This document shows, piece after piece, positions 3,782 through 63,901 of a stretch of 64,000 bases of DNA. Position 1 is the first letter of the stretch. The number at the start of each line of letters is the position of its first letter. The DNA comes from Paragordius varius (lineage: Eukaryota > Animalia > Nematomorpha): the NCBI GenBank assembly GCA_964247055.1, contig OZ176050.1, positions 3,410,001-3,474,000 of the forward strand, written 5' to 3'. The notes under the pieces were generated by a model that did no database searches, was not told where the DNA came from, and was given only the letters and a program-made list of their open reading frames with translations. A program made the position numbers and the translations under genes.

Positions 3782-5382
3782 CACTTCGATTCGAATCGGG
3801 GATCTAAATACCACACACTATTTTTAAATTGATATTAATAAACTACAGAAAAAAACGGTCCTAATTAATTTATGCTTCCATCCTTTTAAATATTATATAA
3901 ATAACACAATATATCTAAAATTGATATAGAGAAAGCGTTTGACAGGATTCCTAGAGAAACTATTTGGTGGAGTCTCCGTTAGGTGCCAGAAAGTTATATT
4001 AAGTTGTTATAAATAATGTACGAATCACACACCTCCGGCATTAAAAATCCACAAGGTTTATCAGAGCCCTTTTCAATAAAGCATGGAGTCTACCAAGGCT
4101 CATCACTCAGCCTTATTGTTTATAATTTGTATGGACGAGGTAGCCAAGGTTGTTAATGTGAGTTCAGGATGGTACTTAATGTATGCAGATGACATAATCA
4201 TCTTGTCTGATTCATTAATTGAGTTAAAGCGAACGGTAAACAGATGGGTTGTTATGCTGGATCAACATGGTCTGAAAGTAAACAAAGCAAAAACCGAACT
4301 TATTACTTTTGGGGGTCCACAACATAAAATGGTAGTTGATGATAGTTGGGTTCTGAAGGGTAAAGAAAGTTGCAAATATCTGGGAGCTATGTTAAGTGCA
4401 GATGGTTAGTTGACGGATGATATTAATTTAAGAATAAAGAGCAGCTGGGTAAATTGGAAGAAAATTTCGACCCTATTATGCGATCGAAATATTGATGTTA
4501 GAGTGAAAGGTAAGATTTACAGTTCAGTTGTCCAGCACTCAATGATGTATAATTTACAGACGTGGGGTGTCGAAAAATTCGAAGAAAGACATTTTAACGT
4601 GACTGAAATGAAAATGCTCAGAATGATGTGTGGGGTAACAAGAAAGGACAGAATCGAGAATAGATTTATTCGTGGGAGCACAGATATTAAACCAATAGTG
4701 GAAAGAATGTCAAAAAATGGGCTGGTTCGGGCACATTGAAAGGAGAGATTCTAATTATATTGCAAAAATAATAGATGGTTATATAGTTGAGGGAAAACGA
4801 GGACGTGGGCGACCTAAAACAAAATGGATAGATACAGTAAAAAGAGAACTAGCAGAATACGAGCTTAATGCAGAAGAGGCCATAGATAGAGTTTTATGGT
4901 GAGACAGGTTGTATAACATGACCGCTCTCACGAGTGAAAACATGTAATGTAATAATATTAACAATAATCTAAAATTTATTTTTAAAAAAGTTCCATATCA
5001 AACGATTTTGGCAATATTTATTTTTATTTTTAAACATTTCGCAAAATATAGTGATTATTTAATTCTAATGCTAAAATTCAGTTACTTTTTTTATTAAAAT
5101 CACATTTGACATTAATATAAACAGAAAAAAATGGTGTGCATCATTTTTATATTTAGCTTAAACAGACATGATGGATTAATTTTTACCTTTGGGTTTTACC
5201 TCTGAATAACTAATATCAATTTTTGAATGAATTTTTTTTATATTTTGGATAATGTTATATTAGTGCACACTTTTGCTATGGTATCAATTCCTTCCACATT
5301 TTTGTAGCATTTAATTTTAACAGGCCTGGGGATCCAACTACCATAATTAATTAAAGAATTAAATGATGTTGTATCCAAGTTG
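3782..5382. mobile_element. piggyBac-like MITE (TTAA|CACTTCGATTC...GTATCCAAGTG|TTAA family), interrupted by a LINE
   Basis: Starts ttaa-cacttcgattcgaa and ends gttgtatccaagttg. The sequence on either side of the LINE is collinear with the uninterrupted copies at 52487-53003 and 55378-55947. Confidence 0.65.
3923..4966 (+). mobile_element. 5'-truncated, decayed RTE-clade non-LTR retrotransposon (reverse transcriptase C-terminal half)
   Basis: IDIEKAFDRIPRETIWW, YADD (YLMYADDIIIL), KYLG, EMKMLRMMCGVTRKDRIEN and RGRGRPKTKW motifs with frameshifts and stops. TAA-rich tail. Flanked by a 10-bp direct repeat atctaaaatt (3913-3922 and 4967-4976). Confidence 0.9.
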
Positions 5383-7509: not shown

Positions 7510-9570
7510 TGGTTAAAAAGGATAGTTTTTGCCGTATTAGGCTGTCCAGTAGTGACATTTCCGAATTAATTTTATTTAAAATAGTGTTGTTAGTTTTGTC
7601 TGTCCATTTTATTTGGAGAAGTTTTTTCTAAACTCATAATTTGAAAGAATTTATTAGTCGTTCGTCACATTTTTTCAGCGTCCCCCATATAGGAATGTGG
7701 GGAAAACTGTTGCCTTAATATATCTACTTTTGCATTATAGTTTGATGTCATGTGACGTCCAAATCTTGTTGTATTTGAATGTAACTGCTTTTGCAATGGC
7801 AATTCTTCTTTTTATTTCTGGAGTAGAGTTGTTTTCATTGTTTATAATGCTGCCCAAACACGTGTAACTGTTTAACGTTTCATTCTGATTACCATTGATG
7901 ATTGAGTTGGTTGTTTGAGCCGAGTTGATTTGTATTACTTTTGCTTTAAATTGATTTTTAATCCGTATATATCGCATTCAGTTGCAAACAATTTCAGAGC
8001 TTGGGATAATGTGTCTATACTGTCCGCGAAAATAACTGTGTCATCCGCGTAATGAACAGATGTGAGTAAGTTTGCTCCTACGTTGCCATAAGTTTCTGAC
8101 ATGTTTCTTAGTATGCATTCGAGATATTCGTTAAAGAAAATTGGGGATAAAACACAACCTTAATGTAAGACGACTTGCACCTCAGATGAATCAGTTATAC
8201 CGTGAGGTGTAGATACTGCAGCAATGGAATGTAAGTAAATTAAGAATATGACGGTGATTAGATGTGTTAATTTTCCAAGTTGTTTTAGGAATGGTCGTAA
8301 TCTATTGTGATGGATAGAATCAAATGCTTTGAAAAAATCGACAAAGCACATATGCAGTTCTTTGTTAAATTCGTTATGTTTCTCTATTTCCACCTCATAT
8401 TGCATGTCATATTGCATGTCATATGGCATCCTCTTCCTTTTCGAAAATCCTAAATCGCAATCTCGGGGTCAAGAAAGGTATTTAGCAGAACCTGTATTCT
8501 TTTTAGGACTTTGGACACCTGTTTAATGAGCGTTGCGGTTCGATAGTTGTCGCACAGTTCTGGATTACTTTTTTAAAAAATAGGAATCATCATTGATTTA
8601 CACCAATCATCAGGAATTGTTTCGATATCAAATATATTTTGGAATAAATTGTGAGTATGTTGATCGGAATATTCAATAGGGATGTCTCTGTGTCCTCCTA
8701 TTGATTTGCCGATACTAGAGTTTTTATAGCATATTCAACTTCTTCTTTCATTAGTGGGTCTATCTCTTGAATAGGTTCTTTAATAATCTGAGGGTTATTA
8801 TGTATTTAGCCAAAGTTTGCGGATTTCGTCTTTTGCAGTGACGATTGAGTTGTTGTCGTTTCTCATAGGTTCCCTGTAGAAAGTTATTTGTGTGGAATAA
8901 TATTATTTCTATGGGCAAAAATATTTCGGTTATTTTTGGCCTCTGTTTCTAACTTATCGCACAGTTGGTCGTAAAAAATATTTTTGTCCACTCTTGCACT
9001 CTTTTGAAACACTATTTAGTTGTTATTCATCCCATTTGCATTCGATTTTGGAAATTCTACGTTTTACTGCGATCTCAAGACTTTTTGCTCACAATTTCAT
9101 TTTTTGTTGAGTATGTTTTAGAGGCTGTATAAATTCGTCGGCTCTCTGCAAATTGTGTGTATCGCGTACCAAAAAGAATTTAAGTTGTGACAGTTTCAGA
9201 ATTATGATCAAGACAATCGAAACGATTTGATAAAACGGCTTAAAATTGTCGTCGATAGTGTCATTCTATTCTTGTTCTGGTGAGTCTGGATATTTTGGGA
9301 AGTTGTAATTTAATGCAGAGTTTGGCAATCAATAGGTTGTGGTCGCTGTAGCAATGCGATCCCGGCAGGCATTTAACATTATGAAATGAACTTTTATATT
9401 TAACCATACCTAATAGGAAGTCAATATGGTTACGGTATCTTTAACACGGGGAACGCCATGTTTATAAACGTCTTTTAGGTTGTTTAAAAAAGGTGCTAAA
9501 CGAAGAACTGGTTAGCACAGTATTCGATCTATCTCCTCGACACAATTATGCTTTGACTCTTAACCCTTAC
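7510..9570 (-). mobile_element. Decayed RTE-like LINE (endonuclease plus RT remnants)
   Basis: Minus-strand fragments HMCFVDFFKAFDSIHH, a YADD-region remnant near 8045-8055 and CLGSIINNENNSTPEIKRRIAIAK, with many stops and frameshifts. Boundaries approximate. Confidence 0.8.
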
Positions 9571-20387: not shown

Positions 20388-20656
20388 TTAAGCCGCTTCC
20401 ACCTTAATTTTAATGGGCATTTCACTTCCGTCAGCATCACATTGATATAAACCATAATCAGAGGCTTGGACATTCGGTATCAAAAGTGTGCCTTGCCTAC
20501 TTTGCGAAGTACTGAGAGATCCGTCGAGTCTGACCCATTTAGCATTGCATTCCGTTTGTCCTGGGATGGGGCAATTGCATTTTAAAGTTAAGGGTTTCCC
20601 GGGTGCTATTCGCACAACCGTTGGTGGAACAGTTTGTACAAACTTTGTTTGCAATG
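20388..20656 (-). other. Ig-like domain 3 (terminal exon)
   Basis: PGKPLTLKCNC...AKWVRLDG...GTLLIPNVQASDYGLYQC shows the Ig core Cys(B), Trp(C) and D-x-G-x-Y-x-C(F) pattern. Stop follows IKIKVEAA, with no TM segment. Confidence 0.9.
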
Positions 20657-23600
20657 CTATTTGCACACATTTAAATAATATTTTTTAGGAAAAGTTGGCC
20701 ATTTTTAAAATATGACTATTCTAAATAACTTTTTAAATCTAAACTATCTTTCTTATTAACCTTATGTTTATTTTCTTGGGACATTAAAAAGATTGGACTT
20801 ATTTCATAGCGCAGATTATATCTAAATTTGGTTAGTATGTGATATATAAGTGATATTATATATGTGCATATATAATTTATTTATTCTATATGGCATTATA
20901 TACATAATCCAGGTAAGTGCATGATATTGTGCCAATATCAAAATAATTTCATGCGTGCTGCTGTGATTTACATATTAATATATATACAGTATCAAAACTA
21001 GGGTGCAAATTAGTAAAAAATATAAAAGATTTATATAAGATTGATGGCAATATCAGTTAAAATTAACCGGTTACAGGAGATACAGCTGTTACAGACGGGA
21101 CAATGGAAGATGCGACGCCTAAAAGAATAGCATAAAAATATGAATTATTATTGCAGGGAATCTATGTATTTTATCAATATTTATTTAATAATAATTCTCT
21201 CAAAATAGCCAACTCTTTGGCACGTATATGCATTTGGACTCACAAAAATCATTTGAATTGCATTAAAAGTAAAACCCTTACACAGCCTCTCTAAATTAAT
21301 TGTTTATTGTTTTAATAAATTAAAAATGATTTTTCCCTTCATGGAAAATATTTTATAATATTCATAAAATATACCCGAAGATACAGGAAAACTTCCAGTT
21401 AAAACTGTTGATGCACTCGGAGGCTCAGTAACAATCTCTGCGACTGTAACAATAGTTGTCAATTCAGGGAGAGCGGGTTGAGATACAAGGCTGGCTGTTG
21501 GAGCTTCTGAAATAACTTGACCAGCCGCAACATTTTCTATATTAAGCAAAAATAAAAGAATTGTTATTTTCAAATTTTGGTATTGAGATTATAAGAGTTG
21601 AATATATAATCGGATAAACTTGTATGTAAAATTTTAATAAATTTCTCATTACACACGCTTCTTTTTTTAATATATATTTTAACCTTAAAATGGTTAAATG
21701 CTATATATAAAAGAGCTTTGTTCAAATCAAATATCAATACGATTTTAGTATTCAATTAAAATTAATTCGTACCAACTGGGGCCACATTAATAATTGGGGA
21801 GGGTGGTTCAGTTACAACCTCGGCTACTGTGATTACAGTTGTGGCTTCTGGAATGACAGATTCGGATATTACCGGTTGAGGTTGAACTGGAGCTAAGAAT
21901 TGATATAATTTTATAACAATGCGAATTAGGGAATATAGAAATATTTACAAATTAGTGATATTGATGGATAAATATGGTTAAATTTATGATATTTACAATA
22001 CCCGATATTGGTTGAGCTATATTAGTACCTGTTTGTGAGGGTATAATGACAGGAACAGGGGCTGGAATTATAGTTTGAACTAATAATAAAAAAGATTGTA
22101 TTTATTTTCATTTTGATTAATTAACTTCAAATATCAATGATTCCGATGGTTTATCAAATTGTCATTAAATTATTTTGTTAGATATAATTTAAGAAGTGTA
22201 GTACCTGGACCGACTACAGTTGGGGTCACGATTTCTGTGGATGGTATCACGAGCTGTTCTGATATCAATGAATCAATAGGTGTTGCAGCATCTAATCAAT
22301 AAATTAATAATTGTATATTTATAATTAAAAATAGGGAAATCTGTTAAAAAATTCATCATTATAAAACAAAAATGATTCATATACTTTCTAAAGATTCTGT
22401 AACGATTTCAATGGGGGGTGTGGTGGCATAATCAATTTCAACTGGGGCGGGAACTGGTTGTTCTATAATTATATAAAAATATTATTCAAATATTTTTTTC
22501 ATTTTTGTTATTATACTATCAATGACTTAATATGAACCTGGGGCGACTATGGGCTGTGCCGTTTCTCCAACTACAATGGGTGCTGGAACTATTGCTGTAT
22601 GAAATAAAATAAAAAATATATATTGTTACAGTTTTGGAATCAAGTTTGAGTCCCGAATTATTATTAACTAAAATCTGTAATAGACTTCTTTTTAAATATT
22701 TTTGACCTTTGGTAAGCTTTTTTTAAAACAGAAATTAAGTAACCTGGCGCGACAGCTGCAGAAGGCGGTTCTGTAATAATTTCAGTTACAGTTATAACGG
22801 AAGGGGCTTGGGATACGGTTTCAGAAACAACCACCGCTATCATATAACGATAAAAAATTATATGAATTTTTAAAAATACAGCGGCCCGAAAAATTATATA
22901 ATTTATATACGTGATTGTGGTGCATCAGGGACTGAAGGCGCTGCTATGGGAATATATGATAATTTATGTAAATATTACATTAACTAGTGATCTCTTAAAA
23001 ATAATTTTTAAAATGTGATATATTTTTTCAGAGTATTTTATACCTGGTAAAGGTTCGACGGATTGGGGAACTTCTTGAACAGCTGGAGGGAGTGGAACAG
23101 CTATGGATTTTAAAATAAAAGTATATTTATTGTAAAAAAATATTTGTAAACTCCATATAGTAAGAAAAAGTTAGCAAGTTTTAACATTTTAGTTTTAAAA
23201 AAAATGTACCACCAAGGCCTGGGGCGGCAACTAGAGGGGGTTCGGTAATTATCTCAGTAACAGTTATTACCGATGGTGCTTCTGACACACTGGATTGTAA
23301 AACAACGGGGGCTATATATTTTAACACATATCCGATTACAAAAATATACTTTTTGACTAAAATATTTATAGTCAAATAACTTAGATAAAATCAATAAACA
23401 TCATTAAAATTCACAAAAAAAATTTTCCCCAATTTATCTCGAAAACCACCAGTTTTAGATATTGTTTAATTTCATGATAAGAATTTGGACTCAGAACTGG
23501 AACCGTTTTTTGGCTCCGGCCGATTCTGGTTCACATGTAAAAAACGGTTTGGGACATATGTTATTTGATAAATATTTGTTGAACAAATAGTTTTGATCTA

Positions 23601-42900: not shown

Positions 42901-45900
42901 AAAACTGTCTTTTATTTGTAAAAACACCCCAAACTTAGTAACTTCAATTTACTGATAATTTAAGGTTTTTTACCAGGTGCAGATGGGACTTCCGTTCCAG
43001 GAACCGGGGTAGCTTCAGCACCTTAATATGAAAAATAGATAGTTGCAAAGCAAATTAGCAAATTAACGTTTTAAATTGTGAGTTTAGGCATTATAATTTT
43101 TGTTCCTATAATTTTGACAAAAAATATATAATTAAAGGTTAAGATTTATTTGTCAAATAATAATATTACCCGGCGACGGTGTCACCTCAGCACCTTCTAC
43201 CGTTCCTGGAACAACGGTTTCACCGGAAGCTGAATATAATAAAATGGGTTTTATTGTAAACAATCATCATTGAAAATACCAAATAATCAGTAAAAATTTG
43301 CTTTGTAATATTGCTTTCTGGTCAAATTTATTCATTATACTAAAAAATTATAGCGTGTATTTATTTCATATTATAAGTTGAATATTTACATAAAATCGGT
43401 AAATTTATAAAAAATTATGTATTCTCCAAACTTATGTATTACCTGGCACTCCAGCGTCAGGGGCGATACCACCAGCACTGATACTAGGAATGGGTGCTAT
43501 TAAAAACGAATGCAATAAAATTTGAGCTTTGATTGTGGTATTTTATAAAAATACATTTTTATATTTACATTAATATCTTTTATTAATACAAGATCATCCG
43601 ATCTTGAAACTTTTTCTTTTTCCTCAAAGTTTCATAGATCGCTATGTATGTAATGAATATATAAATACTTGCACCATCAGGCGTTTTCTCCAACACGACA
43701 GTTATGGTACGACCCGTGTTTTGGGAAACGCATCGATACAGTCCATAATCCTGAGCAGTTATATTCTTGATGACTAGCCGTCCCTCAATAACTACGGCGT
43801 TTGGGGTCATTTGAATGTTTCTTGGACGCGTCCAAGTCACATCACAAACACTGTTTGGTGGTAACACGACACAACTGCATGTAAATTCGACTTCCGATCC
43901 GGGTGGGGCAACAGCCATAGGTGGTTGAGCGACCATTGATCCATCTATATTATAATTGCAGTGTCAGAAAGATAATTAAAGTATGTGCTTTCACCAAGAG
44001 TGAATACTATTTAGATATATGCAATAAGCCAAAAAAGCTTGGATGTCTTAAAGTGGAACTAACTTATTGCGCACATTTACTAATATGAAGTTGGCAATAA
44101 AATTAGTCATTAAAGAATTAAATACCTTACGCCTGTTTTACTACATGTTCAACAACCCATTCAAAGCATAAATTTTGTAAGGACAAAATTTATTAAATTA
44201 TTCAAATTGAGTCAAAATTAATAGATCAATACTAGACCTGGTGAAGGCAAAACTGCACCTCCAATTACTGTTGGAGCACCTGGTTCAGACGGTTGGCCTA
44301 AAAATGGCAAAATATTTATTAAACAATTCATTAAAAAAATATCTTCCATAATTGTGTGTTCAATAGATAAATAACTCACCTTCAGTCAGGACCCCTGGAG
44401 CTGCGGTTACTGTTTCTCCTCCTATTGGAGCTTCTGTTATAGCTGTGTCTCCTACAACCGGTCCGGTAACGACGGTTTCTTGACCTTTATATATAATTTA
44501 ATATTGATGCCATTGAGATAATGATAAAGTAATTGCCTCAATGATATACATTATGATTTTATTTATCTTTCAGAAATTAATATATTGGTTGCCAATCTTT
44601 ATCTGCTTCGAACATGTGAATTTTAGCTATTACTTTGATTGTAAAAATAGTTTATATAATATATATATATATATTAAGAAAGATCTAGATTAACATAAAG
44701 GCTTGATTTAGGATAAGTTTCAAGATACAAATGAATAAGGTTTAAAATTAATATGTAAAAATAAATATAATATCAATATCCCATGATAAATGTAATGGAC
44801 CCTAACGGTTAAATGTAAATAAGAAATACCGCACATTTGCATTTTTTTTCAATTTATAGACTGTATTAGTTTCATAATTTTCCTACCTATAGGAGTTTCT
44901 GTGGCACCAGGTACGATTTCTCCACCAGGACTAGGAGTAACTTCTATTGTGGCTCCCGTGACTACTGTCTCTGGTTCTATAAATATCATTAAAAATGTCA
45001 TGAAATTGACATTATAATTTTTTATCATAAAAAAATTTATGAATAAAAGGCGTTTTTTGCTATGTCATAGTTTGCCGGTCACTAATAATGTCACTTGCAC
45101 ACCCGTATATTTAAATATCAATTTGTGTGTTAACGATCGGCACTCAAAATTATTTCGATAAGAGGGATGCAACAAGAACTATAATATAATCATCGAAAAA
45201 TCATTCTTTTTATAATTATTAAAAACGAAACAATTCGATACATATTCAAAAATGACAGCCCTTTTGTTAATACGGAAATAAATTAAACCTGTTGGTACGC
45301 CAGTGGCTCCTGGAACTACAGAACCATCTGGACCTGTAACTACTCCACCAATTACACTTGGGCCTATTATTATCACATATATATAAAATCGAAATTTGAA
45401 TTCTAATTCTTTAAAAAAGATATTTTCTAATATTAATTTACATACTTGTGGGCGTTCCAACAGTTTCAGGCACTGATCCATCGGGTGTTACAACCTCTCC
45501 GCCTATTACAGTAGGGCTTGGTGCTAAATCAAAATTTTATAAGTTTCCGAAAAATTATCATTCAATACCCTAACTATTTTCATAAATAATTATTAAGTAC
45601 ATTTGGATGAACTTACCTATAGGCGTTACTATTTCTCCTGAGATGGAGCCATCGGGGTTGGTTACAATGCCAGTAATAACAGTCGAAGTTACTAAATTTT
45701 CATAGAAAACAAGCATTTTTTATTTTAAATAAAAACATTTTTGATAGCGTCTGAAAATTTGCGAGTCAAATCAACTGCATGGTTTTTATTAAGGCCACAA
45801 TATATTTTATTAGTATTAACAATCATTTTTTTAGCGTAGGTTTGTATCCAAACCGCTTTTAAATACAAAAATATAAAAATGCATTTAAAATATCTCGTTT

Positions 45901-55377: not shown

Positions 55378-55947
55378 CACTTCGATTCAAATTGGGGTAT
55401 CTAAATACCCCATAAATTTAAATTAATATTTCAAAAAACTACTCAAGGAAACTATCCCAATTTAAATTTATGCTTCTATCCTAATAAAATATATAAATAT
55501 GCCAAAATATCTAAATAAAATTTTGTTCTGAAAAAAGTTTTATGTTAAACTACTTTGACGCCATTTTTATTTTGCAAAATTTTTGCAAAATATCGTCTTC
55601 ATTTAATTTTAAGAGTAAAATTAAAGATAATTTTTATTTAAATTACATCTAACATTTATAAAAATAGAAAAAGCTGTTAATTTTGTATTGTTTTTCAATT
55701 TTTCCATTTCACACATGTCACGTTGACAAAATTTTTACCTTTCGGTTTTAGCCTTAAATAAGTAATATCAAGTATTTTTGAATAAAATTTTTTACATATT
55801 TCGGTTTTTTAATGTTATATAAGTGCAAAATTTTGCCATGGTTTCAATTCCTTCCATTTTTAAAGTATTTGATTTTAAACAGGCTTGGGGTATCCAACTA
55901 TACCAATTCGAATCGAAGGACTAAAACGGGTGTGTTGTATCCAAGTG
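55378..55947. mobile_element. piggyBac-like MITE copy immediately upstream of the DDX54 coding sequence
   Basis: tata-cacttcgattcaaattggggtatctaaatacc ... gtgttgtatccaagtg-ttaa. Confidence 0.7.
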
Positions 55948-55996
55948 TTAAATATAGCAATATTTACATAAAAAACTATTTAACGATCGGTACGAT

Positions 55997-56986
55997 ATGA
56001 AACATGCTCCCAAGTCGACCTGGGGTTTTGAGAAAATAGGTTTTTAATTTTATATATTGATTAGGGTTAATATGGCCCATAGTCAAAGCCATACATTATA
56101 AAGGATATAAATCACCCACTCCTATTCAGCGAAAAGTTTGATTTTTTTAATTATAGGTTATACCATTAATATTAAATGGGAAAAATTTAATTGCAACTTC
56201 TCGGACAGGGAGTGGTAAAACTGCTGCATTTTTGTTACCTCTACTAAATCTTGTATTCAATAATAAAACTCAAAAAATAATTGAAGGTGGGCTAGGATCT
56301 TCCATAAAAGCCATAATATTGTCACCTACCAGGGAATTAGCTTTGCAAACATATAAATTTGCCAAAGAGGTACCTTACTTACGATCAATTTTTTCATACA
56401 TAATTAATAAAATGGATATGTTTAGTTTTCTAAGTTTTGTTCTCTCAACATTGAAGTCATTTTGGGAGGCGATTCGATGGAAAAACAATTTTCACTTTTT
56501 CATGCAACCCCGAATCCTGACGATTCAACATCAACAAACAATAATAATAAATTTTTAAACTCCAATCTTCCAGATATTTTAATAGCTACACCTGGTCGAT
56601 TATGTCATTTATTTATGGAAATGGGGATTGGTGCGCTTACTAATTGTCAATATTTAGTTTTGGATGAAGCTGATAGGTTTTGTTTCATTTACACAAATTT
56701 AAAAAATACTTTTAATAATATTACATTTTTGGTTAAAGAAAATCATTGAAGAAGAAATAGCAGAATATAGTTTAGGAATCTCTAAAATGATATTAATTAC
56801 ATATATGCACCAAATAAGAATATTATTTTATTAATATGTTATTATTTATTTATTTATCATTTAGGTTGGCTTATTAATAGGTTTGTATTAAGTTTTTAGT
56901 AAAAGGTATACCGACAGAGCGGGCAATTTTTTGTTTATTTATAACTAAGTCCATAGTGATAATATATTTCAGATTATTTTGAGATT

Positions 56987-57038
<52 letters not shown>

Positions 57039-60000
57039 TATGCATTTTAATGTATGTTAAGTAATTTTATTGCCTGCCAAATAACATAAATGGTTTATCA
57101 AATGCGTAAAATACTGACCCACAAAATTATTTCGTAGTACACATATGAAAGAGGATTGACGTGAGAATTATCATAGGCTTTAATTTGATGGATATTTTGT
57201 AATGTTAAATTTTGAGAATATAGCAATTTATGTTAACATTTGTAATATTGTTGTTACGTATTTAGATGCGGAATTTTATGGGTTTTTATCTTTGATAAAC
57301 TAATAAATAGTAAAATACGTATTTTAAGATTTTTTATGTTTCCCAAATTTAATAATATATATTTTTCAACATGCTAAATACCTGTATTAATTAATATTGG
57401 TATTATAATTTTATTTAGTTGTTATTACTAACAGGTAAACATATATTTGTGAAAATTTAAGTAGATTTTAGATTTTTGTCTTTTATGTTTTGCATTGTTA
57501 ATTATTAATAATTTTTAAGTATTTCAGACATTTTAATCAGGTAAAAATTGCGGTTTTTAACACATTTAGTAAAAATATAGTTTTTTTTAGTTTTTTAGGT
57601 TTTGCATTGTTAATTGTAATTAACTAGTACATATTTTGGACATTTTAATAATTACAGGTAAAAATTGCGGTTTTTAACAAATTTAGTAAAAATTTAGTTT
57701 TTTTTTGTTTTTTTTAGGTTTTGCATTGTTAATTGTAATTAACTACTACATATTTTGGACATTTTAATAATTACAGGTAAAAATTGCGGTTTTTAACAAA
57801 TTTAGTAAAAATTTAGTTTTTTTTTTTTTTTTAGGTTTTGCATTGTTAATTGTAACTAACTACTACATATTTTGGACATTTTAATAATTACAGGTAAAAA
57901 TTGCGGTTTTTAACAAATTTAGTAAAAATTTAGTTTTTTTGTTTTTTTAGGTTTTGCATTGTAAATTGTAACTAACTACTACATATTTTGGACATTTTAA
58001 TAATTACAGGTAAAAATTGCGGTTTTTAACAAATTTGGTAAAAATTTAATTTTTTTGTTTTATAGGATTTTCATTGTTAATTGTAATTAATTAATTTTGG
58101 ACATTTTAATTAATAAAGGTAAAAAATCAGGTTGTTTTTATATTTAGAAAATTTAATTTTTTCTTGTTTTTTTTTAATATTGTTAATTGTAATTAATTAC
58201 TACATATTTGGAAATTTTAATAAATACAGGTGAAAATGGCGCTTTTTAACAAATTTCAAATGTAAATTTTTTGTATCTTGTATCATTGTTATTTAATTAA
58301 TTACTAAATATTTTGGACATTTAAAAAACTGGTGTAAATTGCGGTTTTTAATAAATTAGTAAAATTTTATTTTTTGTTCAACCTTCCTAATTTATTTATC
58401 ACTATATATTTGTGATACATTGATATATACAGATAAAAATTACTATGACTTGCGGTTTTTTGAATTTTTTAAAATATTTTTTTTGTTTTACTTTGATATA
58501 TAATTAATATAGTTAACATAAGTAGGTAAAAATGCATGTTACGGTTTTATGTTTGCCATTTTATTTTCCAAAACTATTTATATTTTAACAAACACCTTAT
58601 GTCACCAAAGATTGAAAATAAGATCAAGATATATAAAACATCTTTTAAAGTATCTGAATAAATATAAATAAATTTATTTAAATTATAAATGTATAATTAT
58701 ACAAAATATTCATATTATGTTTCAAATTAACATTCTTCTTATTGATTTAATACAGCTGATTTGTTTATACAAATGATGTACGATGCGGTGTGCGTTCATG
58801 ATGATCATATAGATTGAAGAATAGTATAAGATACAATAATTAAATGTAGATAATCCAGAAAATTTTAATCACCATCATTTTTTAGTTAGATTCTATCAAC
58901 TAAAATATAAGATAATTAATATTAGAAAATTGATACCTGGATTCTAGAAGTATTTTCAACATATTTAAATATTAGGGGAAACATTCATAGTTTGAAAGGG
59001 AACTCAAAAGGTTGACTTGGCTTTTTAACAACTAAATTTGCAAAAAAAATATTTTCTTCATGATAAAAAATTCAAAAATAATACTTTATGTTTTTTTTCG
59101 TTCTACCATCCTAAACTATAAATATAAAAAATCATTCTTGACCAAAGCAAACAATGTTTGCCTGCTTAGTTTTTGGAGTGCTCCAAGCTTTTGAAAAAAA
59201 TTATTTTGTTTCTATTTTCTATTTGACGTCATTGGTATGGTGAAATCATAGACCCATGTTCGGGTAAGTATTACTTGCGTCCTTATGCTTAAATCCTTAT
59301 GCTTAATCCTTATGCTTACGTCCTTATGCTTACATCCTTATGCTTACATTTTTGAATAAAAATAATACATTCATCATAAGTCTGCTCCTAGTAGACTTAT
59401 TAAAATTTCAAAGTGGCATAACTTTAAAAATATTGTGAATTTTTGAATTCTGTAAATTGGAGGAGATAAAGTAAAGTATATTTAACAAATAATTTATAGG
59501 TTTGAGTAATGTTGCTTCAATCTTTTGGCATTAAAAGGGGTTTACACAACCCTGTTAAAAAATAGAAAATTCCTAAAACATGCATTTAAAATCAAAAGTT
59601 TTTTAGAAGAAATAGGTATGCATTTTATCCAACTATATTTTTTAGATTTTTTTGAGTTATCAAAATTGAAATATTTGCATACTTTGTGAAATAAAAAAAT
59701 CTATTCAGTTTTTCAAATTCTTTAAATTGGAGGATAAAAATGATGTATATATAACAAATTATTTATAGGTTTTAGAAATTGAATGATCGCATACACTCTT
59801 AGTGAACTAAGCTTCTTGAAAAATGGAACATACATGTAAAACCCAAAGTTTTTTAAAAGGTGTGCAATTGATTTAACCATATTTTTTAGATTTAGATGTC
59901 ATGGCGATCGAATTATCTGCGCACTTTTTGCATTTTGAGGATGAAGCATTGAAGAATTTATTTTATTGGATTGCATAAAATTTTTACTATTTGATATATA

Positions 60001-63000
60001 AAATTATATATTTATGTTTATTGTCAATAAATATGTGATAAATTTACTTTAGTTTCAAGCGTCTAAAAAGCATATTAATCCACAGTGCACAAAATCGGAT
60101 GCTATAAAAAATATTATGATCAATATATATTGCATATTAGGAAAATCATGGTGCTTGGTTTTAGGTCTAACGAATAATATTGAGGTATATCCAATTTTGT
60201 GGTAATTGCCTTATCGAAAGGTTGCAAATTAGGCAAACTTATTTGGAGTCTACGCTTAAAATTCTAAACAAACTTCATTTTGGTTTTCAAATATAGTTTA
60301 TAATTTAATGATATTATTAAAGGAAATTAAACTTTGACCAAAAAGACTCCCCCAAATTTAAAGCAAAAGCTAATCATAATTTTGAGGTGATAGAAATGTT
60401 AAACAAAAGTGTTTTTGTAATATCTTAAAGCACCATAAAATACGATTGCCAAAATTTTTAACAAAATCTATTATATTGTCAAATACTAATTTATATGAAA
60501 AATATTATCGCGCATCAGCTTTTTTAAAAAACTGGCCAATTTTAGAGAAGTCCAAAAAGTTGTTTTGGAACCTATGCTTAAAATTTTAAATTTCATTTTT
60601 GTTTTCGAATATAGTTCATATCAAAATATAATGGTATTTTTAAAGGGAAGCATTTAGCTTTCATATAAAAAATTATAATTTGCCTAATTTGTAACCTTTC
60701 AAGGAACAATTACCACAAAATTGGATATACCTCAATATTATTCGTTAGACCTAAAACCAAGCACCATGATTTTCCTAATATGCAATATATATGATTGATC
60801 ATAATATTTTTTATAGCATCCGATTTTGTGCACTGTGGATTAATATGCTTTTTAGACGCTTGAAACTAAAGTAAATTTATCACATATTTATTGACAATAA
60901 ACATAAATATATAATTTTATATATCAAATAGTAAAAATTTTATGCAATCCAATAAAATAAATTCTTCAATGCTTCATCCTCAAAATGCAAAAAGTGCGCA
61001 GATAATTCGATCGCCATGACATCTAAATCTAAAAAATATGGTTAAATCAATTGCACACCTTTTAAAAAACTTTGGGTTTTACATGTATGTTCCATTTTTC
61101 AAGAAGCTTAGTTCACTAAGAGTGTATGCGATCATTCAATTTCTAAAACCTATAAATAATTTGTTATATACATCATTTTTATCCTCCAATTTAAAGAATT
61201 TGAAAAACTGAATAGATTTTTTTATTTCACAAAGTATGCAAATATTTCAATTTTGATAACTCAAAAAAATCTAAAAAATATAGTTGGATAAAATGCATAC
61301 CTATTTCTTCTAAAAAACTTTTGATTTTAAATGCATGTTTTAGGAATTTTCTATTTTTTAACAAGGGTTGTGTAAACCCCTTTTAATGCCAAAAGATTGA
61401 AGCAACATTACTCAAACCTATAAATTATTTGTTAAATATACTTTACTTTATCTCCTCCAATTTACAGAATTCAAAAATTCACAATATTTTTAAAGTTATG
61501 CCACTTTAAAATTTTAATAAGTCTACTAGGAGCAGACTTATGATGAATGTATTATTTTTATTCAAAAATGTAAGCATAAGGACGTAAGCATAAGGATTTA
61601 AGCATAAGGATGTAAGCATAAGGACGTAAGCATAAGGATTAAGCATAAGGATTTAAGCATAAGGACGCAAGTAATACTTACCCGAACATGGGTCATATAC
61701 TTTTCATATTTATAGTTTAGGATGGTAGAACGAAAAAAAACATAAAGTATCATTTTTGAATTTTTTATCATAAAGAAAATATTTTTTTTGCAAATTTAGT
61801 TGTTAAAAAGCCAAGTCAACCTTTTGAGTTCCCTTTCAAACTATGAATGTTTCCCCTAATATTTAAATATGTTGAAAATACTTCTAGAATCCAGGTATCA
61901 ATTTTCTAATATTAATTATCTTATATTTTAGTTGATAGAATCTAACTAAAAAATGATGGTGATTAAAATTTTCTGGATTATCTACATTTAATTATTGTAT
62001 CTTATATTATTCTTCAATCTATATGATCATCATGAACGCACACCGCATCGTACATCATTTGTGTAAACAAATCAGCTGTATTAAAATCAATAAGAAGAAT
62101 GTTAATTTGAAACATAATATGAATATTTTGTATAATTATACATTTATAATTTAAATAAATTTATTTATATTTATTCAGATACTTTAAAAGATGTTTTATA
62201 TATCTTGATCTTATTTTCAATCTTTGGTGACATAAGGTGTTTGTTAAAATACAAATAGTTTTGGAAAATAAAATGGCAAACATAAAAGCGTAACATGCAT
62301 TTTTACCTACTCAGATATGTTAACTATATTAATTATATATCAAAGTAAATCAAAAAAAATATTTTAAAAAATTCAAAAAACCGCAAGTCATAGTAATTTT
62401 TACCTGTATATATCAATGTATCACAAATATATAATGATAAATAAATTAGCAAGGTTGAACAAAAAATAAAATTTTACTAATTTATTAAAAACCGCAATTT
62501 ACACCAGTTTTTTAAATGTCCAAAATATTTAGTAATTAATTAAATAACAATGATACAAGATACAAAAAATGTTACATTTGAAATTTGTTAAAAACCGCCA
62601 TTTTCACCTGTATTTATTAAAATTTCCAAATATGTAGTAATTAATTACAATTAACAATATTAAAAAAAAAAACAAGAAAAAATTAAATTTTCTAAATATA
62701 AAAACAACCTGATTTTTTACCTTTATTAATTAAAATGTCCAAAATTAATTAATTACAATTAACAATGAAAATCCTATAAAACAAAAAAATTAAATTTTTA
62801 CTAAATTTGTTAAAAACCGCAATTTTTACCTGTAATTATTAAAATGTCCAAAATATGTAGTAGTTAGTTACAATTAACAATGCAAAACCTAAAAAAACAA
62901 AAAAACTAAATTTTTACTAAATTTGTTAAAAACCGCAATTTTTACCTGTAATTATTAAAATGTCCAAAATATGTAGTAGTTAATTACAATTAACAATGCA

Positions 63001-63901
63001 AAACCTAAAAAAACAAAAAAAAACTAAATTTTTACTAAATTTGTTAAAAAACCGCAATTTTTACCTGTAATTATTAAAATGTCCAAAATATGTAGTAGTT
63101 AATTACAATTAACAATGCAAAACCTAAAAAACTAAAAAAAACTATATTTTTACTAAATGTGTTAAAAACCGCAATTTTTACCTGATTAAAATGTCTGAAA
63201 TACTTAAAAATTATTAATAATTAACAATGCAAAACATAAAAGACAAAAATCTAAAATCTACTTAAATTTTCACAAATATATGTTTACCTGTTAGTAATAA
63301 CAACTAAATAAAATTATAATACCAATATTAATTAATACAGGTATTTAGCATGTTGAAAAATATATATTATTAAATTTGGGAAACATAAAAAATCTTAAAA
63401 TACGTATTTTACTATTTATTAGTTTATCAAAGATAAAAACCCATAAAATTCCGCATCTAAATACGTAACAACAATATTACAAATGTTAACATAAATTGCT
63501 ATAATATTCTCAAAATTTAACATTACAAAATATCCATCAAATTAAAGCCTATGTTAATTCTCACGTCTATCCTCTTTCATATGTGTACTACGAAATAATT
63601 TTGTGGGTCAGTATTTTACGCATTTGATAAACCATTTATGTTATTTGGCAGGCAATAAAATTACTTAACATACATTAAAATGCATACTGTATATATATAT
63701 ATATATATAACTATACAATCCAAGCTAAAAATATTTTTACCTCTTTTAGGCTGTTAGAGATGGGATTTGCACCTCAATTAACCGCTATAGTTTCTAATCA
63801 TTTACCCAAACCCATACAAACTCTTCTATTTTCAGCAACATTAAGTTCAAATATGACTTCCTATTTTTTGGATCAAGCCAGTGACGCATCAATGCACAAT
63901 G
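55997..63901 (+). CDS. DDX54: ATP-dependent DEAD-box RNA helicase DDX54/DBP10, 5' part (continues beyond the window)
   Basis: Exons 55997-56039 (or an acceptor at 55957 if further 5' exons exist), 56065-56135, 56157-56369, 56426-56676, 63750-63901. Translation GFEKIG|LIWPIVKAIHYKGYKSPTPIQRK|VIPLILNGK...SRTGSGKTAAF...LSPTRELALQTYKFAKE|FSKF...ILGGDSMEKQF...IATPGRL...LDEADR|LLEMGFAPQL...LLFSAT. Q, I, Ia, GG, Ib, II and III motifs are present, with DDX54-typical GYKxPTPIQRK, RELALQTxKF and GGDxMExQF. Confidence 0.88.
56989..57035. repeat. (TA)n microsatellite (others at ~500-536, 2450-2474, 16338-16368, 24937-24962, 26927-26950, 47527-47551, 63690-63708)
   Basis: Directly visible dinucleotide runs. 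Confidence 0.95.
57480..58400 (+). repeat. ~118-bp minisatellite in the left foldback arm (8 units, the last ones diverged)
   Basis: Unit ttttgcattgttaattgtaattaactactacatattttggacattttaataattacaggtaaaaattgcggtttttaacaaatttagtaaaaa... starting near 57490, 57601, 57720, 57836, 57952, 58069, 58176, 58283. Confidence 0.9.
59281..59346 (+). repeat. 13-14-bp tandem repeat (ccttatgctt-a-nnt) x5; x7 in the opposite arm at 61572-61665
   Basis: Direct count of ccttatgctt and aagcataagg units. Confidence 0.9.
62440..63250 (-). repeat. ~118-bp minisatellite in the right foldback arm (7 units)
   Basis: Reverse complement of the left-arm array with one fewer unit. Confidence 0.85.

Follow-up and report, generated by a model that had tools for sequence, protein, structure and literature searches.

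Introduction

To our knowledge, introns of less than 30 nt have long been held to be absent from animals. The introns of ciliates, chlorarachniophyte nucleomorphs and microsporidia are ultra-short and uniform in size, and these are unicellular or organellar systems that are highly reduced. A survey of 51 animal genomes published in 2026 found introns below 30 bp only in the Myxobolidae and in Dicyema japonicum (PMC13644364, Mol Biol Evol 2026), and nematomorphs are unmentioned in its main text. Introns are also unmentioned in the Gordionus genome paper and in the comparative preprint on nematomorphs and a mermithid.

Here we consider how a locus from the nematomorph Paragordius varius compares with these systems. 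The locus lies in a 64,000-nt stretch of contig OZ176050.1 (positions 3,410,001 to 3,474,000 of the forward strand; hereafter the window), in which a first-pass annotation, made from the letters alone, had placed two obligatory spliceosomal introns of 25 and 21 nt in a gene for the helicase DDX54. DDX54/DBP10 is a housekeeping ribosome-assembly factor. We refer to the two segments as A and B, and have assessed them through homology, independent DNA, orthologous loci, a census of helicase genes across the assembly and the spliceosomal RNAs.

Gene model and identity of the helicase locus

The window is AT-rich animal DNA (21-35% G+C), and the DDX54 gene model within it is given in Table 1, where A and B are the first two introns. 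The start codon is tentative, being the earliest ATG in the open frame with a high-copy repeat directly 5' of it, and an upstream exon is possible. Exon 1 encodes the conserved aromatic F that lies upstream of the Q motif. A further GT..AG segment of 33 nt within exon 5 (63845-63877) was considered as an intron and dropped, since it is in frame and stop-free and the homology does not need its removal.

Table 1. Features of the DDX54 gene model, in window coordinates
Feature	Position	Strand	Description
DDX54 exon 1	55997..56039	+	ATG at 55997; 14 codons plus first base of a Gly codon
Intron A	56040..56064	+	25 nt, GT..AG, phase 1, splits the Gly codon
DDX54 exon 2	56065..56135	+	71 nt; Q motif at end (...GYKSPTPIQRK)
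Intron B	56136..56156	+	21 nt, GT..AG, phase 0
DDX54 exon 3	56157..56369	+	71 codons; motif I (TGSGKT), motif Ia (PTRELA)
DDX54 intron 3	56370..56425	+	56 nt, GT..AG, phase 0
DDX54 exon 4	56426..56677	+	Motifs Ib and II (DEAD); ends in phase 2 within an Arg codon
DDX54 intron 4	56678..63749	+	7,072 nt; mostly foldback insertion, ~57036-63689, TA-repeat flanks
DDX54 exon 5	63750..63900	+	Motif III (SAT); 3' end tentative; gene extends past the window

The first-pass annotation also had the two tiny introns coexisting with introns of 53-80 nt and with one of 7 kb. Short and long introns do occur side by side here, but the neighbouring intron (56370-56425) is to be corrected to 56 nt. The long intron (56678-63749) exists, but ~6.65 kb of its 7,072 nt is an inserted foldback element. 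This inverted-repeat element (57036-63689) has TA-repeat flanks, makes up ~94% of intron 4 and carries mirrored ORFs, at 59525-59689(+) with 61227-61364(-) and at 59722-59880(-) with 61038-61211(+). The repeat directly upstream of the DDX54 start codon (55800-55969) is of very high copy number, with a summed contig depth of 10^5-10^6 as against ~400-800 over the gene, and has hundreds of diverged copies with many internal rearrangement joints. Elsewhere in the window there are fragments of reverse-transcriptase-like retroelement ORFs on both strands (4083-4739 and 7735-8429), as well as immunoglobulin-like domain exons on the minus strand (20388-20666 and 43583-43936; ...DYGLYQC and ...DYGLYRC) which flank a micro-exon elastin-like region.

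Exon 3 has a Pfam DEAD match, and its best database matches are fragments named DDX54/DBP10 from other organisms, at 57-64% identity; a word search of the protein database with this exon returned no transcript-derived protein of the same species. In the downstream DNA of the same contig (L002) helicase motifs V and VI are intact, and the four best PDB matches of the helicase-C exon found there are DBP10/DDX54. The Q motif and motifs I, Ia, Ib, II, III, V and VI were all found, as befits a DDX54/DBP10 DEAD-box helicase, and the gene is closer to DDX54/DBP10 than to other DEAD-box proteins. Exon 3 is unique in the genome, where the closest other match is a paralogue at 47% identity, and DDX54 is single-copy in this genome. 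A six-frame search of the genome found no DBP10CT (NUC160) domain; an ORF piece at L002 7832-8032 aligns with positions 1-31 of the DBP10CT profile at 17.8 bits, which is below the 27-bit cut-off. The segment at L002 1419-1616, tried as an exon, may not be one, and was unrecognised by PDB and Pfam searches. A downstream DDX54 intron holds a retroelement on the minus strand (L002 2449-3979; G000:C1:3476149-3477679) whose two reverse-transcriptase-like ORFs are 376 and 150 aa long, and a similar retroelement lies at L002 8112-9347.

Reading frame and homology at the two junctions

Read on in the frame of exon 1, segment A brings a TAA two codons in (56045-56047), and its 25 nt also shift the frame; B, read in frame, contains TGA, TAA and TAG. 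Both segments were thus confirmed as the first-pass annotation had described them, at 56040-56064 and 56136-56156. When the flanks are translated separately, exon 1 supplies the F-x-x-x-G of the extended Q motif, exon 2 reads L...GYKSPTPIQRK and exon 3 reads VIPLILNGK...TGSGKT...PTRELA.

All homology searches were run exon by exon, and no joined (spliced) protein was used. In phmmer searches against PDB sequences, residues 2-23 of exon 2 correspond to human DDX54 104-125, which was the sole match below E = 0.1, and residues 2-71 of exon 3 correspond to human DDX54 127-188 (E ~1e-13). Given that exon 2 leads to DDX54 104-125 and exon 3 to 127-188, the junctions are seamless, and over human DDX54 ~96-188 no residue is gained or lost at either of them. 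The earlier proposal that removal of A and B restores the GFxxxG-L and PTPIQRK-(T/V)IP segments of DDX54 is borne out by this exon-wise alignment. The GT and AG dinucleotides are rare in this DNA (0.044 x 0.039), and for B the boundary finder returned a unique GT..AG solution at the junction. Minor-class (U12-type) introns were considered and rejected for both segments, which start with GTTT and have neither the (A/G)TATCCTT 5' consensus nor a TCCTTAAC-like branch site.

Independent DNA and allelic variation

A contig from an independent sequencing run (X1) is identical to the assembly over 55911-56188, both segments included. A contig from another run (X4), which covers 55952-56794, represents a second allele in which both segments are again present, the only difference within them being a 1-base deletion in A, at 56041. 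The first-pass annotation had allowed that the assembly might have collapsed longer introns, and this can be ruled out because the independent contigs carry both segments. The contigs at this locus from runs X1, X3, X4 and X5 are all unspliced and DNA-like, and none of the sequencing runs matching the locus is recorded as RNA.

The second allele is also informative about constraint. Its 579 exonic nt show four substitutions, of which two are synonymous and two conservative (I to M; L to I), and are free of indels, whereas the opening 117 nt of intron 4 contain nine substitutions together with four indels. The deletion in A would be harmless only if that segment is removed. Such a pattern is that of exons under purifying selection whose interruptions are non-coding. 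The I to M change arises from an allelic A>G at 56038, which falls in the final complete codon of exon 1, and human DDX54 has M at this position.

Intron positions in other animals

Orthologous loci were found in two ENA assemblies (L035 and L036) and in one Logan genomic contig (L034). In both ENA assemblies the counterpart of exon 2 has the boundaries seen here and a length of exactly 71 nt: the same Gly codon is interrupted in phase 1 at its acceptor, and its phase-0 donor follows ...IQRK. The intron at the position of B is 2.6-2.9 kb in these assemblies, and that at the position of A is longer than 69 nt. Overall, the 71-nt exon 2 with the same phases was counted in three other animal genomes, the locus details giving the 71 nt for L035 and L036. 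The Logan contig has a 69-nt GT..AG intron at the exact position of A, in phase 1 and in the same Gly codon; it is without intron B, and has the position of intron 3 in common with the DDX54 gene described here.

Database matches to exon 3 add further animals, in which nine or more ORF fragments called from genomic DNA start at the B boundary and end at that of intron 3. These fragments begin at (T/A)IP after an acceptor-like ...Q, and end with ...KE followed by a V that comes from the GT donor. The orthologous DDX54 introns of L034, L035 and L036 have the same positions and phases as those described here, but are 69 nt to 2.9 kb in length, compared with 25 and 21 nt. Because their positions and phases match those in L034, L035 and L036, A and B are positional orthologues of ordinary introns.

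Ultra-short introns across the helicase genes

The whole assembly (110.6 Mb in 44 contigs) was searched with the DEAD and Helicase_C families. Profiles were our own, built from fetched sequences; stop-to-stop segments were chained by their profile coordinates, and junctions were accepted where GT/GC..AG boundaries kept both frame and residue count. In the N-terminal half (Q motif to DEAD) of ~24 DEAD-box genes, DDX54 among them, this census recovered 12 introns of 21-28 nt and 12 of 56-644 nt, with zero between 29 and 55 nt. Across the Helicase_C domain at 30 loci there were 14 introns, of 89-1016 nt, and none was ultra-short. Stops within the Helicase_C matches were considered as signs of tiny introns and set aside, as all fall at exon margins.

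The ultra-short class therefore accounts for 12 of the 24 N-terminal introns and for none of the 14 in Helicase_C (Fisher p = 0.001, for one gene superfamily surveyed with a custom profile and boundary finder, in which introns of the same gene are not independent), and for 12/38 helicase-gene introns overall. At 10 of 11 short junctions GT..AG gave one solution consistent with both frame and homology, compared with 0-2 solutions for three alternative dinucleotide pairs matched to it in base composition. All three census introns with a length that is a multiple of three carry in-frame stops. The best explanation of this one-superfamily census is that introns of 21-28 nt form a distinct size class which occurs genome-wide and is concentrated towards the 5' end of genes. 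Introns of 22-28 nt were seen in nine paralogous helicases (L005, L008, L009, L011, L014, L015, L016, L022 and L027), at varied positions around the Q motif and motif I, and L008 has two 22-nt introns ~110 nt apart.

Splice signals and spliceosomal RNAs

All 12 short introns have GT..AG ends. Their interior is 92% A+T, and conservation at their 5' end is limited to GT and a subsequent A or T. T predominates at positions -3 to -6, and A makes up about half of positions -7 to -12, with no sharp motif. The branch point is probably supplied by this A-enriched stretch 7-12 nt upstream of the AG, a compositional hint drawn from 12 introns.

The best U1 gene has a canonical ACUUACCUG 5' end, with which the 5' splice sites of the short introns pair weakly. 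The best U2 (L075 1495-1700) has a canonical GUAGUA box for branch-site recognition, the linker that precedes it being longer by a single A, and U6 has a canonical ACAGAGA box and AGC triad. The coexistence of short and long introns had earlier been taken to imply an unusually flexible spliceosome; with U1, U2 and U6 canonical at these sites that implication is unsupported, and nothing in the snRNA sequences points to an altered spliceosome. U1 genes are clustered at G000:C6:565000-634000 and C6:3718000-3734000, with 17 matches of which 8 are above the gathering score and many are degenerate. There are 46 U2 matches, many of them partial and many near contig ends (G000:C3:257000-527000; ends of C4, C6 and C8).

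Discussion

The proposal with which we started, that DDX54 carries two obligatory spliceosomal introns of 25 and 21 nt, is supported by homology, shared positions, independent contigs, the pattern of selection, the single copy of the gene and its intact motifs. Taken together, these lines of sequence evidence make it very probable that A and B are genuine, obligatory U2-type GT-AG introns of a single-copy DDX54/DBP10 gene. Both would be removed from the pre-mRNA, and their removal would be required for production of the helicase. We infer that they are excised from RNA and recognised across the intron by the major spliceosome, with the branch point located as suggested above. The signals available for this would be minimal, amounting to GT and an A or T at the 5' end and, at the 3' end, to a run of about four T's before the AG. 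On this reading ancient introns would have been reduced in this lineage almost to the physical minimum, giving a 21-28-nt class that would coexist with ordinary introns ranging from 56 nt to several kb.

It may be asked whether real introns with such weak signals are efficiently spliced. Retention, which would bring a stop after 16 codons, could throttle or regulate DDX54 output as in microsporidia, for whose short introns a median efficiency of ~25% has been given (cited in PMC13644364). The poor pairing of the 5' splice sites with the canonical U1 5' end is in keeping with this idea, as are the in-frame stops in the three census introns of multiple-of-three length, through which unspliced RNA would be exposed to decay. 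In ciliates, too, in-frame stops in introns have been reasoned to expose unspliced RNA to decay. We nevertheless regard regulation by inefficient splicing as unlikely, given that DDX54/DBP10 is a housekeeping factor and that half of the N-terminal introns of the DEAD-box genes are ultra-short, which makes them look routine rather than regulatory. A different view of the in-frame stops is that the locus is a pseudogene or decaying copy, in which A and B are disruptive insertions kept in the RNA. Transposons do crowd the gene, with the foldback element in intron 4 and the reverse-transcriptase element in a downstream intron, and the locus-matching runs include none recorded as RNA, but this explanation seems to us very unlikely: there is no other DDX54 copy in the genome, all of the helicase motifs are intact, allelic changes in the exons are only synonymous or conservative next to an intron full of changes, and the supposed insertions have GT..AG ends and fall exactly at ancient intron positions.

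The sizes of A and B also invite comparison with segments that are removed by other means, whether through programmed DNA elimination, as their size resembles that of ciliate eliminated sequences, or through an endonuclease-ligase route such as that of the XBP1 intron, which is 26 nt long and likewise similar in size. Against elimination, DNA contigs from two samples contain both segments, which moreover have GT..AG ends, whereas segments eliminated in the ciliate manner would be expected to be absent from the DNA of the sampled tissue and not to depend on GT..AG. Non-spliceosomal removal in general is difficult to reconcile with GT..AG ends in 12/12 members of the class, with GT..AG being the single solution at 10/11 junctions compared with 0-2 for pairs of the same composition, and with positions orthologous to those of ordinary spliceosomal introns, so that we consider it extremely improbable. 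Finally, DNA that is very AT-rich and of low complexity might be thought prone to collapse of longer introns or to spurious inserted bases, but an assembly or sequencing artefact carries a negligible probability when an independent contig is identical across both segments and a second-allele contig differs within them only by a 1-base deletion.

If A and B are indeed spliceosomal introns of an otherwise ordinary gene, it is of interest how they came to be so short. On balance, and with some caution, we favour the view that, independently of dicyemids and myxobolids, a slowly evolving, transposon-rich bilaterian shrank its ancient introns to 21-28 nt, and did so only near the 5' ends of genes. 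If this is the case, it would represent a third animal origin of introns below 30 nt, would separate extreme intron shortening from genome compaction, and would imply that introns near the transcript start are recognised, or shrink, in a position-dependent manner. Compaction would then not be the whole explanation, because the tiny introns are confined to gene starts amid long introns and transposons. A further lineage beyond two reduced, parasitic ones would also shift where the lower limit of animal introns lies and why it lies there. There is a practical consequence as well. Standard gene finders and RNA aligners work with a minimum intron length of ~20-60 nt, and default annotation will leave many genes here, the essential DDX54 included, truncated or broken at the 5' end, which can inflate apparent 'gene loss' in lineages of this kind.

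The first-pass annotation had listed ciliates, nucleomorphs, microsporidia and dicyemids as the main lineages with introns of about 20-25 nt, and that list has to be extended by the myxobolid cnidarians (PMC13644364). It is myxobolids and Dicyema japonicum that the present case resembles in being animal, with GT-AG introns of <30 nt at conserved positions and canonical U2 machinery (PMC13644364). The signals are also alike, consisting of GT and one further base at the 5' end, little polypyrimidine tract and a few weakly conserved A's before the AG. Those animals, however, have compact, fast-evolving genomes with a median intron of 22-27 nt, whereas here the lengths are bimodal (21-28 nt as against >=56 nt), the short class is found only in the 5'/N-terminal parts of genes, and the genome holds kb-sized, transposon-filled introns of up to 7 kb. 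With 12/38 helicase-gene introns in the short class, ultra-short introns are not the genome-wide norm that a median below 30 nt in a compact genome would represent. Nor does the genome look fast-evolving in the manner of myxobolids and Dicyema, in that a 1,004-residue Mi-2/CHD open frame shares 56-69% identity with proteins of mites and vertebrates, which marks the animal as an ordinary bilaterian. The present introns resemble those of ciliates, chlorarachniophyte nucleomorphs and microsporidia in falling within 15-30 nt, in having GT..AG ends and in carrying in-frame stops where the length is a multiple of three, but they occur in a bilaterian animal with a normal intron repertoire alongside. 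Relative to all of these known cases, what differs here is a bimodal, 5'-restricted distribution of ultra-short introns in a genome that is not compact.
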